This document shows positions 15,588 through 22,800 of a DNA stretch of 52,171 bases, piece after piece. Both the position numbers and the translations under genes were made by a program. Below the pieces are notes generated by a model. The model was not told the origin of the DNA. It worked only from the letters and a program-made list of their open reading frames with translations, and did not search any database. This stretch comes from Klebsormidium nitens. Its lineage: Eukaryota > Plantae > Klebsormidiophyceae. The stretch lies in contig DF237553.1 of the NCBI GenBank assembly GCA_000708835.1, forward strand, positions 1-52,171. Reading direction: 5' to 3'. Every line of letters begins with the position of its first letter. The stretch's first letter is position 1.

Positions 15588-18500
15588 CTACTTCTCGAAC
15601 ATGCCCTTCTTGACCCAGCCGGGGGCCAGCACCTTCTTGCCCCGCGCGAAGCTCCAGCGCAGCGCCAGGTCCGCTTCCCGCAGGACCAGCACGTCCCCCG
15701 GCAGCCCCGCCTCCACCCGGCCTGCCACCAAGCAGGAGGGGTAAGTGCGGGGAGAGCGCCGATGCTTGTCAACGTGCGAGCGGAAAGCTCGGTGGTTCCG
15801 GTCGACCCTTCTTGAGCAAACAGGCTGCCTGTGAGCGGCGACGCAACAAAGGGAGCGCAGCAGGCACTATAGTCCACCACGAGAAGTTGTCTTGCCCCGC
15901 TGCACAGCCGCTGGTCCAATTGTGCGATCCCTCAGTCAGACACGGAGATCGCAGCGCCAACTCAATCAGTATGGCGGCCTCGAGGGCGGGCAAGCGCTCG
16001 TCCCCGTAGGTGCACCCCGCGGTCACTAGGTGGACTTCAGTGTAGAAGCAAGTGTATGACCGTGTCAAGCCATCACGTGCAAACAAGAGATAGGATGGCG
16101 CCGTCACCTGCGGCGAGCAGGCCGAGGAAGTGGGCGGGGTTGCGGGTCACGAGCTGCAGCGCGGTGGGGAAGGCCCACCCGTGCGCGAGCACCAGGGCGC
16201 GCACCGTGGCCAGCAGCGATGCCGGCGAGAAGGCGCCGTAGCGCACCAGCCGACCCGCGCTGTCGTACTGCGGCAAGTCGACGGGAAGGGTCGACAAGCC
16301 CAGACCACAATTCTGCTACGTGCAATTGATCTGGAAAGAGAACACAGCCTCTCGACCGATCGCAATGGTACTTTTGACAATATCCAGGCATGATCATCAG
16401 CGCTGGCGAGGCACACGGAAGCGCTTTGGATGGGGCGAAGAAGCCTTTCAAGAGGAAGGCGGGCAGCGGGTCGTACTTCGGGGAGCGAGCCAAAGGCGTC
16501 GGACGAAAGGGAGACACCCGAGAGCGGCACCCCGACGCGCCGCCACTCCAACAACGCCGCTACAGACGCATTCTCGCCCGCCTGCACCAGAAATGCACCA
16601 AGCGGTCAATACCAGAGACGCATACGCCTGCATGGTCAGCGACCAGATACAGGCCCCGCAAGATCTGCCCCAAGCTGCTCCTATGCCGAGCCGGCCTGCT
16701 TTCTCCAGCCAGATGTTGAGACCAAAGGGCTTTCCTTTGTGCCTTGACATTTTCAATTTTTCGTTTGACTATTACAACAGATTTAGCTCAGAGCACGGCC
16801 GTTTCGGGAGTGCATCAGAGAACCCCAGCGAACCTCGCTGATCGTTTGTCTTTCTGGCCCACCTGGTCAGCCGTGAAGTCGACGTGGCCCCCCTGGCGTA
16901 CCCAGCGCGCTGCATCGGCCAGCAAAGCGGGCCCGCGCAACGAAACGTGGGTGGGCAGCAGGTGCGTCATCGGGAGCGCACCGCCGGTCGCGTTCACCAC
17001 CGCCCACAGCGGGCCCAGCAACGACGGCGCCTGCAGGGCCAAGGGAAGGCGGCATCAGGAGCTGCCAGTAAACCAAATGACTGCCAACAAAGCAAGCATG
17101 GGCCTTAGGGACGGGGCGAAACGCCCTGGTGTTAGCGACAAAGTAGACTGATGGCCTCATAGCGCTCCTAAGACACAGGTCGCCCACCAAAGGTCCACAT
17201 GACTCTTTTCTTTCGAATCAGACACGAGGGTGGTCTTGGACACCAGTCAATTGAGAGGGCTCCCCAGCGTACATGGGTGGAGCGGCGGCGCGGCGCCCCG
17301 ACGTACATCGCCGACATGCAGGTGCAGCACGCCGCGCTTGCCAATCAGCATGCCGCCCACGCGGGCGTCTGCCGCCAGGCTCAGCAGCTCCGCTGTGGAC
17401 GGCCAGCTGCTGCGGTGGTCGCTCACCGCCACCTCGCCCGCGCCCACCACCTGTGCGGAGCAACCGAGAGAACGCTTCAGAAACGATGACAACGACTGCA
17501 CCACGAGCTTCAAGGTGAAAATGTGGCGTGGCTGCTTCGACGGGAAGGCAAGGGGTTTAGTTGCGGACACTGTGCGTCCGGGTTGGACGGCCTGCATTGG
17601 AGCTCAAAGCTTCTAGCTTGCCTATGGCGGCGATTGAATTGATCCAAGCCCAGCCATCAGTGGACCAGGTGGCATGCTTGCCTGGTCCACAAGGGTCATG
17701 TCCCGCACGAGGGAGCCGGTGAGGGTGGGCGACGGCACGCGGTAGCAGCCGACCCACATGTGCGCGTGCAGGCCATCCGCCTCCAGGGCAGCCACCTGCG
17801 GGAGCATGGTTGAAAATAGAGGGAAGTCGAGTTTGTTGCCTGGGAAATTTTCAAACAAATTGGGCTCTCACAATCGAGTAAACACAGCGTCAACAAGATT
17901 GCGCAGCACGGCGATTTTATTGACCAAGAAGGTACCGAGCTCATTTTCACCCCGACAAACGATAGCCATGCAAGTCCCATAGCCCTACCTTGGCGCGCAG
18001 GTTCTCCAGGCTGCGGCTGACGCAGTCGGTGCCCAGAGTACCCACCACTGTGGTCACGCCCGCCGCGATGATCTCAGAGAGCTGGGCCTCCGGCTGCAGA
18101 TCAACGTAGACGACACGGGTTGGAAACAAGATATTTATCCTCGAAGAACCTGGTACGAAAAACTGAGTTAGCCATCTCAGGTCAGGAGGCATATCAGTCT
18201 ATAGGCCCCGCTTTCTGCTTCGCCTTCCAACCCTCCCTCTCGTGGGAGTTGGAGACCATTCGTAAAACATCAATGCATCACCGCTGCGTCATTTCATTGT
18301 TTCACCAGGTTCTAGTGACCAGGCTGTTTTAGACACAACGACAAGTCCGCTAAGGTTGGAAATTCTGGTGGTTGAAGAGCCCTCACCGTCCTGCTTGCGG
18401 GTCCTGCTTCTCCGCCCCCGCCTGTGATGTGCTCGTGGATGTCCACAAATCCAGGCACTACCACATGTCCCGCAGCGTCAATCACCTGGGGGGGGGGTAG

Positions 18501-19486
18501 GACACAGACCTCAGGCTGCCAATAAAAGCAGTCAGATCTGACCCGCCATTGCAGAAGCTCCCGACTTGCAAGTCACCGGCACTAGAGTTCTTGACCGGCA
18601 AGCAGTCAACACACTCTGGGACCACTTTCCCCAGATATAAGCTGGAATACGGATTGGCATAATAGATCCGGCCAGATGCTGACAGGGTGAGCTTTTGCCA
18701 CAGTGGCCTAAGTGGGTGGCATAGTTGAGCGCTGCACTGCTGTCCCCTTTGACTAGACCCTCTACAGAGCAGCTTTTAGGGGCGCCTACCAGTGTCCATC
18801 ATGAGAGGCTCACCTCGATTGGCAGGCCAGAGAAGTTAGCGGCGGGCATGTCTTGCGGGTCTAGGATCGCTGCAATCATGCCCCCCGCCAGAAGCACATC
18901 TTGACACCCTTCACACAACAAACAGTCAGGTCAGGGAGCAGGGAATGGCACCTGCTCCACCACTGTTGGAGCGCTACAAGCTGCAGTGAGGGTCATCAGG
19001 GAGGGGCATGGAGCACAGCGCAGGTCCACACTTGACAGCAGCATCCTCAAAAGTAAAGGACCTGTAGCAAGACACCCCTGAAAAGATGCCAGATGAAACC
19101 AGGATACCAGCAGCTGCACATATGTGTATTGCAAGATTTCTTGATGCAGTCTTACATACCAGGGGCTCGGGGGTGAAGACCTTTCCATTGATCAGCAATG
19201 TCATGGTAGGAGGAGTCTGAGTATCATGCTTTGGCGCAGCTTTGCTCAGATGACTGTCAAGGGCTGCGTCACATGTGGCAGCTCCTTGGCCTCCTTGCAA
19301 GCACTGATCAGCGGCAGCCCCGCTATGCGCGTCTACCTCTAGAGTGTGAGCACTATGCATAGCCCAGATTTGGAGCATCGCTGAGACGACAAAGAAGTAC
19401 AGAACAAACTGCATTTTGCGGGGTGACCGCAGCATTGTAAAATGCGATAGAATCTTGTCCTCTGATGCAAGAGCTTTAAGGCTCAT
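15588..19486 (-). CDS. iadA: Isoaspartyl dipeptidase (beta-aspartyl peptidase, IadA; amidohydrolase superfamily) with an N-terminal hydrophobic extension
   Basis: The spliced exons give TLLINGKVFTPE...PGFVDIHEHITGGGGEAGPASRTPEAQLSEIIAAGVTTVVGTLGTD...GCYRVPSPTLTGS...GEVAVSDHRSS...ARVGGMLIGKRGVLHLHVG...LLPTHV...GGHVDFT...VSLSSDAFGSLP...NPAHFLGL...KKGMFEK*. This is colinear with my recollection of E. coli IadA (GFIDQHVHLIGGGGEAGP, SDHRS, LLPTHV, LSSDGNGS, KGTFE). The start could be ATG 19486, 19435 or 19414. Confidence 0.9.
17451..17681 (-). other. Predicted GC-AG intron in iadA
   Basis: The exon ends GACCAG|GCAAGC and the next starts cacag|GTGGTGGGC. This phase-0 join restores DQ-VVGAGE as in IadA; I found no suitable nearby GT donor. 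Confidence 0.75.
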
Positions 19487-19849
19487 CACACGCCTGACTA
19501 GTTGAAAAAAGGCGTTGCTGGTGATAATCGCCGGCCCGGCCCCTGCAGCCTAAAAAGCTGCTTGCACCCACGTCTTGTAATCTGTTCTGGCCGATCTACG
19601 CAGGACCTGCCACTTCAAAAACGAGCGGTTCCATCTTTGGGCATTGGCCGCATTAATTGTGATTGACCTTGTGTGCAAGTTTGCCCAGAACTTGAGAGCT
19701 CAAGATAGCAATGGCCGCCATGCACGCCGCCGCCATGCACAGGCTCGGAATTGCAGTGCCTGCCCGCAGAGCCGGCCGCGTGACACCGCCGCCGCAGGGT
19801 TTGAAGGGTTGGCTTGATTTTCATCAATGGTAGCCGTGCGATCTCGCAG

Positions 19850-22800
19850 ATCGACGGTCGAAGTGGACACGCATCGTCTGCAAGCGGCCTTGAGGGCCGT
19901 CAACGGCCAGCGACCTATTTCGAAGACTTTCGCAGCACGCAGGGGCGGCGCCAGAACCTTCGACATCTTGCACACTCCTACTGTAAAGACGACCTGAGGC
20001 CTTATCATAAGACGCAAGTGGTGCGCCCTGTGCTGCGTCTCAGAAGACCCCACTTTAGCGCGCTAGCCTTTGCTCTTCTGCTCTGACTTGAGGCACTGCA
20101 CCGCCTGCAGACCACAATTGACGGCATTGGAGCATTGCTTCTACGCTGCGCCTCCAGAACCAGGGCAGCATTTGGACACACCTTGACAGAGTTGCCACGT
20201 CGGTTTGTTGACTTTCAGAAGAGCAAGCGGCGCAGTTGCTTCAGTTGCATGGTTTCTTGTGTGTGGAGAGGCGCGTGCAGCGTTGTGCTCGCCATACGGC
20301 AGTGCTTCGGGCTAGAAGACGTCAACAGGCAGGAGGAAGACAGGCTGGCCGTGATGGATGTGCTGCTGCACAAGGCTCTCAGTCCAAGTAGCAGCACTCC
20401 GAGCCCGCCTCGCGGGAATGCTGAACTACACCACCAGAGACGAACAAAGGAAGGCTCACGGTAAGCCCTGCATGCCATCAAGCCTGAGCCCTTCTGAATC
20501 AGGCTGAAACGAAGCAGGAAGTTCAAGTGATTGTATTCAAAGGATCGTTTTCTGCAATGGTGATGAAGTAAGTGTTTTGGAAGCGTTGCAAGAGCACTTC
20601 AGCACCTTAAACGTTGCATAGAAGTTTCAAAGAAAGAACAGAATTCATTGTGGGTGCGCATGACAGGGTTCCTAGCAAATGGTCTTCACCTTGTAGACAG
20701 CAGTATCTTCTGAAAGTCGACCTTCTTTTGTGGGATTTTGACTACCATGCAACTTTTGACAATAGGGGGGTTTGTAAGAAAGACTGATTGACAACATTTT
20801 GAAAGGGGTTTCAACAACGGCCTTCTGGCCTAGGGGTTAAGTATGATAACAAAACCTTAAAAAAAAAGTGCTTGCTACTACAGAAGGCATCCAGGAGACT
20901 CCCCTTGCCAAAGCCAGCAATCTGGCTTTTGCCATCTGACAGGTGTCAGCGCTGGAGGGTGTTCAATTGAAGTTCATATACAGCTGTCTGGAGGTTGAGA
21001 GGTTCCTTACTCTTTCAAGGCTCCTATACATTAAAGCCTATTAACGAGGGGGGTGTACTAACAAAAAGGTTCAGAGTCATGGTATTGAAGTGCAAGCCTC
21101 TGCCAAAAGATTGCATCTGTTCGTTTGGCAAAGTGGTGCTCAGCATTGGCTGTCCGCTAGACAGCTTCTTGCTCAAGCACAGGTGTCCCTGTCATGAAAA
21201 GGTGTAGAAAGCCGTTGTGAGGAGCCTGGTGCGTCCTGTTCCCGCAGGCCCGCCAGCGCAAGCATGCTGCAGAAGGCTCTTGTCAAGCTGGTGCCCAAGG
21301 CCAAGCCTCCGCCCCCAAGCACCATGGAGACACCGGAAGGCTCGTACTTCGCGCTTCCAGTAAGTGCATACAAGGTCGATAACCCTGCCAAATACATTCA
21401 TAGCGCTGTTGCATAGATAACAACTTTTGCATTATTCTCAGATCCCGAGAGCCTGGGTGTTTGGCTTTGCAAACCTCGTGTCCTGAACCACACATTTCGA
21501 AGATGCACAGGGAGACTCCAGCTGTCTGCTTGTATGTCCTGGGCATTCTGTTGGAAGCTCGTCGATTCGTTGTCATCACCACGCAATACTAACCGTTTCG
21601 CTCATCCAGGTGGCAAAGCTTGTAGCCAGGCCTTCATCGCTTTTCATTCCTGGACTAAGAACCTATGTAAAACTATGCATCTTTTCGAAAGCAAACATGA
21701 ATGCTGACAACTGCAATCACATCCAACGCCAAAACCAAAGAACTTGAAACTGTTTCAGAGTTCCTCTCTTTGCCACCTGTCTGCCGTCCGAAAGATTCCT
21801 TGACATTCTGATCATCCCTAACGTCCCTGTCTCCCAGGCGGCTGACTCCGGGGTTCTCGCCCCCCCGGGCGGTATTCTGCGGCGCAACCCTGGGCTGGAG
21901 AACGCGGTTCCGCAGGCGGGCACGAGCGCGCGGCCGCCCGCGAGCAAGACGCCCGTGCGCAAGCAACTAGAGGAGGCGCTGCGGCACTACGCGCGGCTGC
22001 AGCAGGAGCTGGTGCTGGAGCAGGGGGCGAGGACCAAGCAGGGCGAACAGGTCAGTGACGCACTGGTGAAGGAAGAACTTTATAGGAAGTTATGAACTTG
22101 CTGTTGCACGGGAGAGTGGAGGGCAGCTCGTCATCCTAAATGCTTAAGCGGTTGATTGATTTTCTATTCTTCACTGCTTCCAAAGCTACGTCATTTAAGG
22201 GCCACGTTTTGGTGGTCGAGTGTTTGTTGCTTTTGCGGCAGATGCACATCAAAAGGTCCGCATCGCTCGAATGAGACGTTCATTTTTGATTATCTAGAGA
22301 CGACAGATACAGCCACGATTGCCAGGAATGAGTCATGATTGGCTGGCGGCTCGCAGGTGCGGGTGCTGACCCGCGAAAACGAGGAGCTGCGCCTGAAGGT
22401 GACTACTTTGGAGGGAACGATCACCGGTCTGCACGCGGTAAGCAGTTCACGAGCAATTTGTAGAAACAGATTTCGAACACATTTCGTCATCAAGTGTCAT
22501 TCGTAGAATTTGGCACCGTTCTTCTTGCTCTGATTGGAGTGAAAAGAGGGGGGTGAATGAAATCGACCCTGATCGAGGACTGGGGGCCGTAGCTTAAGAA
22601 AGTGGATCCTTAGGGTCTAAGCTAGACATTGTTGACAAAGACTAAGCTGTTCATACATCTATTTTTGGATTTGCAGGGATACCAGAGCAAGTTGCTCCTC
22701 CTCGAGAACGCGTTGCAAGAGTCGGAGAGCAAGAGAAAAGAGGGTGAGGATGCCAGAACACCAGAAAAGGCAGAATACTTAAAGATGCTTTCAATCACGC

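Follow-up and report, generated by a model that had tools for sequence, protein, structure and literature searches.

The Klebsormidium nitens homologue of iadA lies on the minus strand at 15588-19435 of the window, the whole 52,171-bp stretch of DNA analysed here, and is made up of ten exons and nine introns (Table 1). Intron borders are GT-AG throughout, except for a likely GC donor after exon 5. The donor that closes exon 1 (T/GTAAG at 19155) is the sole GT donor compatible with the reading frame. Exon 1 is part of the gene, since MTLLINGKVFTPEPL aligns to the domain starts of the Marchantia and Selaginella orthologues and exon 2 matches the Sphagnum protein (69% identity). Summing the exon lengths gives 390 residues for a start at 19204, which equals the bacterial length, and 467 residues for a start at 19435. 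Precursor and domain lengths were taken from these exon-length counts, and whole-protein comparisons used the public gene model (P0159). The C-terminus of the protein (...KKGMFEK) is without KDEL or HDEL.

Table 1. Features of the K. nitens iadA locus, listed from the 5' end of the gene
Feature	Position	Strand	Remarks
In-frame TAG	19550-19552	-	upstream limit of the exon 1 open frame
First in-frame ATG, MSLKALASEDK...	19484-19486	-	possible start; 24-residue n-region ahead of the core; fails the simple signal rule
Favoured start codon and basic n-region MLRSPRK	19415-19435	-	A at -3
Hydrophobic core MQFVLYFFVVSAMLQIWAM	19358-19414	-	candidate signal-peptide h/c-region or signal anchor
Linker, 51 residues, two Cys	19205-19357	-	sequence not conserved; model confidence low
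Start of the IadA domain in exon 1, MTLLINGKVFTPEPLV plus 1 nt	19156-19204	-	placed by alignment to orthologues
Exon 2	18814-18908	-	N-F-S sequon; ATG 18849 is the start of the public model
Exon 3	18387-18485	-	HxH metal-binding motif DIHEH, and GGGGE
Exon 4	17989-18093	-	
Exon 5	17682-17795	-	3' end at the likely GC donor CAG/GCAAGC
Exon 6	17307-17450	-	GAGEVAVSDHRSS ... HLHVGD
Exon 7	16863-17030	-	N-A-T sequon and LLPTHV
Exon 8	16477-16581	-	N-A-S sequon; LSSDAFGS (catalytic Asp)
Exon 9	16108-16267	-	end placed at the G before GTGACG
Exon 10	15588-15721	-	stop codon TAG at 15588-15590

Over the ~2 kb that lie 5' of exon 1 (19550-21700), neither strand carries a high-GC3 open frame, and the next candidate coding stretch upstream of iadA is found near 21750-22090. 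Thus, nothing in this long intergenic region constrains where transcription starts.

The public K. nitens model, KFL_006040030 (P0159), begins inside exon 2, and neither exon 1 nor the earliest conserved strands are included in it, so that conserved residues of the domain are missing as well. It also omits three residues (VDQ) at the junction of exons 5 and 6 (17680-17690). The junction that is consistent with homology probably uses the GC donor, a GC-AG intron that the predictor would have avoided. A corrected gene model for K. nitens iadA is a practical by-product of this analysis.

Judged by its sequence, the gene is the K. nitens orthologue of the bacterial isoaspartyl (beta-aspartyl) dipeptidase IadA, which is assigned to the binuclear metalloenzymes of the amidohydrolase fold (MEROPS family M38). 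The exons match the NCBIfam family TIGR01975 (beta-aspartyl-peptidase) collinearly, over profile positions 49-345. P0159, which is without profile positions 1-41 and the three residues at the exon junction, scores 308 bits against a curated cut-off of 331.25; the cut-off is passed by the orthologues from Marchantia (368.8 bits) and Selaginella (389.1 bits). P0159 aligns to residues 51-388 of E. coli IadA (1ONW) with E=1e-71, and the binuclear metal site is kept: DIHEH, HLHVGD, LLPTHV, and LSSDAFGS align to H68/H70, H201, H230, and D285 of 1ONW, respectively. The equivalents of Glu77 and Tyr137 of the E. coli enzyme are also retained. The carboxylated, metal-bridging Lys162 of E. coli is replaced by Glu in K. 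nitens (exon 6, GAGEVAVSDH, at ~17430). The same Glu is found in a bacterial homologue (P0004) and in the plant orthologues, and is thus a common variant of the family and not a defect of this gene; because most of the retrieved homologues carry it, E. coli IadA is the unusual one in this respect.

All IadA structures matched in the PDB carry the bacterial-type domain. The algal protein shares this domain with E. coli IadA (PDB 1ONW/1PO9), and in both it runs for 390 residues from the equivalent of the MTLLING Met, but the algal gene adds nine introns and an N-terminal extension of 77 residues composed of a signal-like segment and a linker. E. coli IadA is a cytosolic enzyme that has no N-terminal extension. 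To our knowledge, all IadA enzymes characterised to date are cytosolic and bacterial.

A preliminary description of this DNA had claimed an open frame of about 95 codons upstream of MTLLINGKVF, encoding a basic n-region (MLRSPRK) and a hydrophobic core, followed by a flexible linker with two Cys, and each of these elements reads as it had been described. The frame of MTLLINGKVF (ATG 19204) is open for 115 codons upstream, as far as the TAG, and for 94 codons when counted from ATG 19486. It contains five in-frame ATGs ahead of 19204 (19486, 19435, 19414, 19378, and 19360), and just two out-of-frame ATGs fall between 19486 and 19204, at 19274 (a 1-codon ORF) and at 19227 (an 8-codon ORF). The core MQFVLYFFVVSAMLQIWAM has a Kyte-Doolittle mean of 1.71 over 19 residues, with 2.49 in its best 11-residue window; these 19 mostly hydrophobic residues, two Gln among them, sit within a run of 25 uncharged residues. 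The 51 residues of the linker are mostly small and polar. In a single-sequence AF2 model of the 92 residues from 19435, the core is helical (pLDDT ~91), one long helix spans residues 5-46, and the linker is modelled with low confidence. The Met of MTLLING, whose ATG has an A at -3, falls exactly at the bacterial start and matches profile position 1-2 of the bacterial family; the extension thus lies entirely outside the enzyme domain.

Read from ATG 19435, the N-terminus has the tripartite anatomy of an ER-type (Sec61) signal: a 7-residue basic n-region (MLRSPRK), then a 12-residue core (FVLYFFVVSAML), within the range of 7-15 uncharged residues that defines an h-region, then QIWA ahead of a candidate cleavage site (QIWA/M) with a small residue at -1. 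Translation would most likely begin at this ATG, with 19486 or 19414 as less likely starts. We applied a simple signal rule, a home-made one distinct from SignalP, which looks among the first 31 residues for an uncharged 10-residue window whose hydropathy reaches 2.2 or more; the n-region must be non-negative, and positions -3 and -1 must hold small residues. Of the three candidate starts, 19435 and 19414 pass the rule and 19486 fails it. It is positive for 3.4% (7/203) of the ATG-started open stretches in the window. Among homologues, it accepts 20 of 25 with a hydrophobic extension (not an independent validation, as these had been classed as hydrophobic beforehand by a related criterion), none of nine with other extensions, and 5 of 120 without an extension.

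With 19486 as the start, the n-region would be long and the core might act as an anchor; a core of 19 residues would suit an anchor as well as a cleaved signal. If left uncleaved, most plausibly after a start at 19486, the core would hold IadA as a type II membrane protein with its catalytic domain in the lumen or outside the cell, which is a variant of the main secretory reading. The length of the hydrophobic and uncharged runs and the single long AF2 helix are in keeping with such an anchor, as is the 19486 start itself, from which the core begins only at residue 25 and the signal rule is failed. Against this stand the two Gln within the core, the classic A at -1 that follows it (IWA/MH), and the cores of the orthologues, which are shorter, typical of signal peptides, and followed by small residues. 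Retention as a membrane protein is, in our view, unlikely.

No Pfam or NCBIfam family matched exon 1, as is expected of a signal and a linker. A word search with exon 1 (109 aa), covering exon-sized fragments, gave seven word-sharing candidates, none of them at E<=0.01, and a metagenome scan with the exon gave 168 pattern matches, none of which was confirmed. Scanning with a degenerate NGKVFTPEP pattern retrieved a single chance match on a bacterial contig (L009). One Logan contig from a close relative (L001, 88% identical in exon 6) starts at the last codons of exon 2.

We collected relatives of the protein by a HMMER search with exon 6 and two word searches, in which the 8000 candidates sharing the most words were scored. 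The word search with P0159 returned no relative nearer than land plants, and neither it nor the word search with exon 1 retrieved a transcript-derived protein from K. nitens or a close relative. The closest relatives, with 57-65% identity in the domain, are from Selaginella (LOC9634176, P0002), Sphagnum (P0151), Calypogeia (P0152), Marchantia (P0153, annotated as 'beta-aspartyl-dipeptidase (metallo-type)'), Riccia (P0156), and Ceratodon (P0157), together with one moss transcript. All six land-plant orthologues have a hydrophobic N-terminal segment, a non-conserved linker that often contains Cys, and a domain start of the form M-x-L-L-x-N-G (MILVKNG, MVLLHNG, MILLLNG, MTLLVNG, TLLLNG, and MLLITNG). 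Their extensions measure 39-177 residues overall, and the maximal hydropathy over 10 residues is 2.5-3.35, compared with 2.45 in K. nitens. The match to TIGR01975 begins at residue 97 in Marchantia and at residue 54 in Selaginella, and in both genes the signal, the linker, and the domain start are all encoded in exon 1, as proposed for K. nitens. The orthologues differ from the algal protein in that their linkers bear no sequence similarity to the algal one, and the land-plant genes are poorer in introns (five exons in Marchantia versus ten in K. nitens).

The called protein of the moss sequence (P0155) begins with the domain Met and looked signal-less, yet four contigs (L005-L008), intron-free Logan contigs assembled in several runs that were taken as moss transcripts, carry MKFLYSVTIFLLGLLYVPSVAHS in frame 37 codons (~110 nt) upstream. 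On this reading of the contigs, the caller chose an internal Met, which is an error of the same kind as in the public K. nitens model. Because gene callers systematically miss the signal in this family, counts of secretory proteins in the clade come out too low where members seem plain. A signal that is neither predicted nor conserved had been named beforehand as grounds for refuting the idea of a targeted enzyme; the segment and linker are present in every full-length streptophyte orthologue found (7/7).

A rival reading is that the upstream frame belongs to an untranslated leader or a promoter and that only chance has kept it open, in which case translation would start at 19204 and the enzyme, as in E. 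coli, would be cytosolic. Frames open for this long are not unusual in the window: across its six frames, at least 94 open codons precede 8.5% of codon positions and at least 115 precede 5.1%, and a first-order Markov simulation with local composition places such a stretch at 1.6% of positions. Yet an open frame together with a signal-like start is expected in only ~0.1-0.3% of genes. At 0.48, the extension has the GC3 of non-coding DNA (intron GC, 0.48-0.59), well below the 0.79-0.98 of exons 4-10. Exons 2 and 3, whose status is not in doubt, have low values too (0.65 and 0.58), and with such a 5'-to-3' gradient within the gene GC3 does not settle whether the extension is coding. The Met at the bacterial start, with its A at -3, would suit a cytosolic enzyme, but five of the six land-plant orthologues, and the moss transcript as well, retain the equivalent Met while clearly having a signal upstream of it, and hence it is not evidence of a start. 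That the extension is without sequence relatives in the word search and the metagenome scan would also suit this rival. Against it, a start at 19204 would leave a leader of less than 23 nt, or one that contains upstream ATGs, and would make K. nitens the sole streptophyte orthologue without a signal. We regard a frame open by chance as quite improbable.

A FastTree phylogeny built from 155 homologues places K. nitens in a clade of 34 rows (SH-like support 94) that also contains the land plants and many eukaryotic transcripts. By inspection of their N-termini, 24 members of this clade bear a signal, six are N-truncated and thus uninformative, and four are full-length and without a signal; counting the moss signal read from the upstream contig, signal-bearing proteins make up 24 of the 28 informative members. 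A signal-bearing protein from Rhodelphis is placed in a neighbouring eukaryotic branch. The chlorophyte homologues from Micractinium, Coccomyxa, and Myrmecia are without a hydrophobic extension and belong to a different branch of the tree, and bacterial and archaeal homologues, located elsewhere in the tree, likewise have none. The chlorophyte proteins (Micractinium, Coccomyxa, Myrmecia, and Chlorella) are of the same family and are 46-52% identical to that of K. nitens. Chlamydomonas has been reported to lack M38 altogether (review, PMC8643629). The extension is shared by the streptophyte orthologues and by most of the wider clade, and not by the orthologues from Micractinium, Coccomyxa, and Myrmecia.

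No seed-plant or fern protein occurs among the best 120 relatives in the word searches, where vascular plants are represented by Selaginella and the other land plants are bryophytes. The gene may have been lost in euphyllophytes, which we note as a lead from these best 120 relatives and not as a finding.

The domain-start Met is kept, although internal, in seven of eight streptophyte sequences (P0002, P0151, P0152, P0153, P0157, and L005 included). A second, cytosolic isoform might be initiated from this Met, or its presence may be plain inheritance. Targeting by an organelle presequence (chloroplast or mitochondrial), or a pair of isoforms in which a long secretory form is accompanied by a short cytosolic one made from an internal transcription start or from this Met, appears very improbable: relatives with non-hydrophobic extensions exist (Tetraselmis P0008 and P0009) and the internal Met is well conserved, but the K. 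nitens segment is strongly hydrophobic and not of the hydroxylated or amphipathic transit-peptide type, the five in-frame and two out-of-frame ATGs ahead of 19204 make leaky scanning unlikely, and a Met that opens the first beta-strand could be kept by inheritance alone.

Two further features of the domain were noted. K. nitens IadA has three N-x-S/T sequons (in exons 2, 7, and 8), and that of exon 7 (VVNATGG) is shared by 19 of the 34 clade members, including most of the signal-bearing homologues, compared with 11 of 121 sequences outside the clade. Independently, and with less weight, these sequons hint that the protein passes through the ER.

A pair of Cys, one in exon 4 (GTDCVSRS, ~18030) and one in exon 5 (VGCYRVPS, ~17745), is present in all streptophyte orthologues; the two are not found together in E. 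coli, in chlorophytes, or in most other homologues. They may form a disulfide, which would fit an oxidising compartment.

Since a signal is the rule in the clade, and K. nitens has an open, signal-like extension of similar length at the right place, we favour the reading in which its IadA is synthesised as a precursor that carries an ER signal. We consider targeting to the secretory route in some form to be highly probable, and routing into the secretory pathway with a cleaved signal to be likely. The gene would be transcribed and translated through exon 1 to give a precursor of ~467 residues, consisting of the basic n-region, the hydrophobic core, the flexible linker, and the 390-residue enzyme domain. 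The hydrophobic core would take the nascent chain into the ER, and cleavage of the signal would then leave the mature enzyme in the lumen of the secretory route. From there, the favoured destinations would be either a lytic vacuole or similar compartment of lysosomal type, or else the apoplast or wall space.

Isoaspartyl residues accumulate in long-lived proteins, and the beta-Asp dipeptides that remain after proteolysis require dedicated enzymes. Beta-aspartyl peptides are also hydrolysed by the Ntn-type isoaspartyl peptidases (plant-type asparaginase/EcAIII/ASRGL1 and glycosylasparaginase), which resemble IadA in this activity but are unrelated to it in fold and mechanism (a Thr nucleophile exposed by autoproteolysis) and have no sequence relationship to it. 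Among them, the lysosomal glycosylasparaginase is a precedent for beta-aspartyl hydrolysis in a lytic compartment. In K. nitens, the substrates of IadA would be beta-Asp-X dipeptides left over by ordinary peptidases. One source would be aged proteins in which Asp has isomerised or Asn has been deamidated, and another would be cyanophycin, from which beta-Asp-Arg is derived. A lytic vacuole or the wall space is favoured because beta-Asp dipeptides are end products of the proteolysis of aged proteins, and because IadA also cleaves the beta-Asp-Arg derived from cyanophycin (PMC10206079).

More tentatively, and with somewhat less than even confidence, we suggest that an IadA clade spanning eukaryotes (Klebsormidium, bryophytes, a lycophyte, Rhodelphis, and protist transcripts) works in the secretory or endolysosomal route. 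Its role could be to complete the degradation of isoaspartyl peptides, either in lytic vacuoles or in the wall space. Alternatively, terrestrial algae and bryophytes might harvest beta-Asp-Arg from the cyanophycin of neighbouring cyanobacteria.

The IadA family is well known, and the sequences of the orthologues are already public. In the full-text literature we found neither a study nor a mention of a signal-bearing eukaryotic branch of IadA, nor an experimental study of the bryophyte and lycophyte orthologues; the sole near match is a single M38 entry in a table of the predicted Trichoderma secretome (PMC3533174). The signal-like extension is thus without a published description that we could find, but it marks a whole eukaryotic clade and is not particular to this alga. 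Secretome predictions overlook the protein, as the K. nitens model and several automatic calls in the family begin with an internal Met. Marchantia is transformable and has a clean orthologue, so the reading is directly testable there. If true, the conserved signal of the streptophyte and protist branch would place isoaspartyl chemistry in a vacuolar, lysosomal, or extracellular setting, and a secretory IadA would suggest the recycling of aged wall or vacuolar proteins, or the scavenging of nitrogen, for example from cyanophycin dipeptides.
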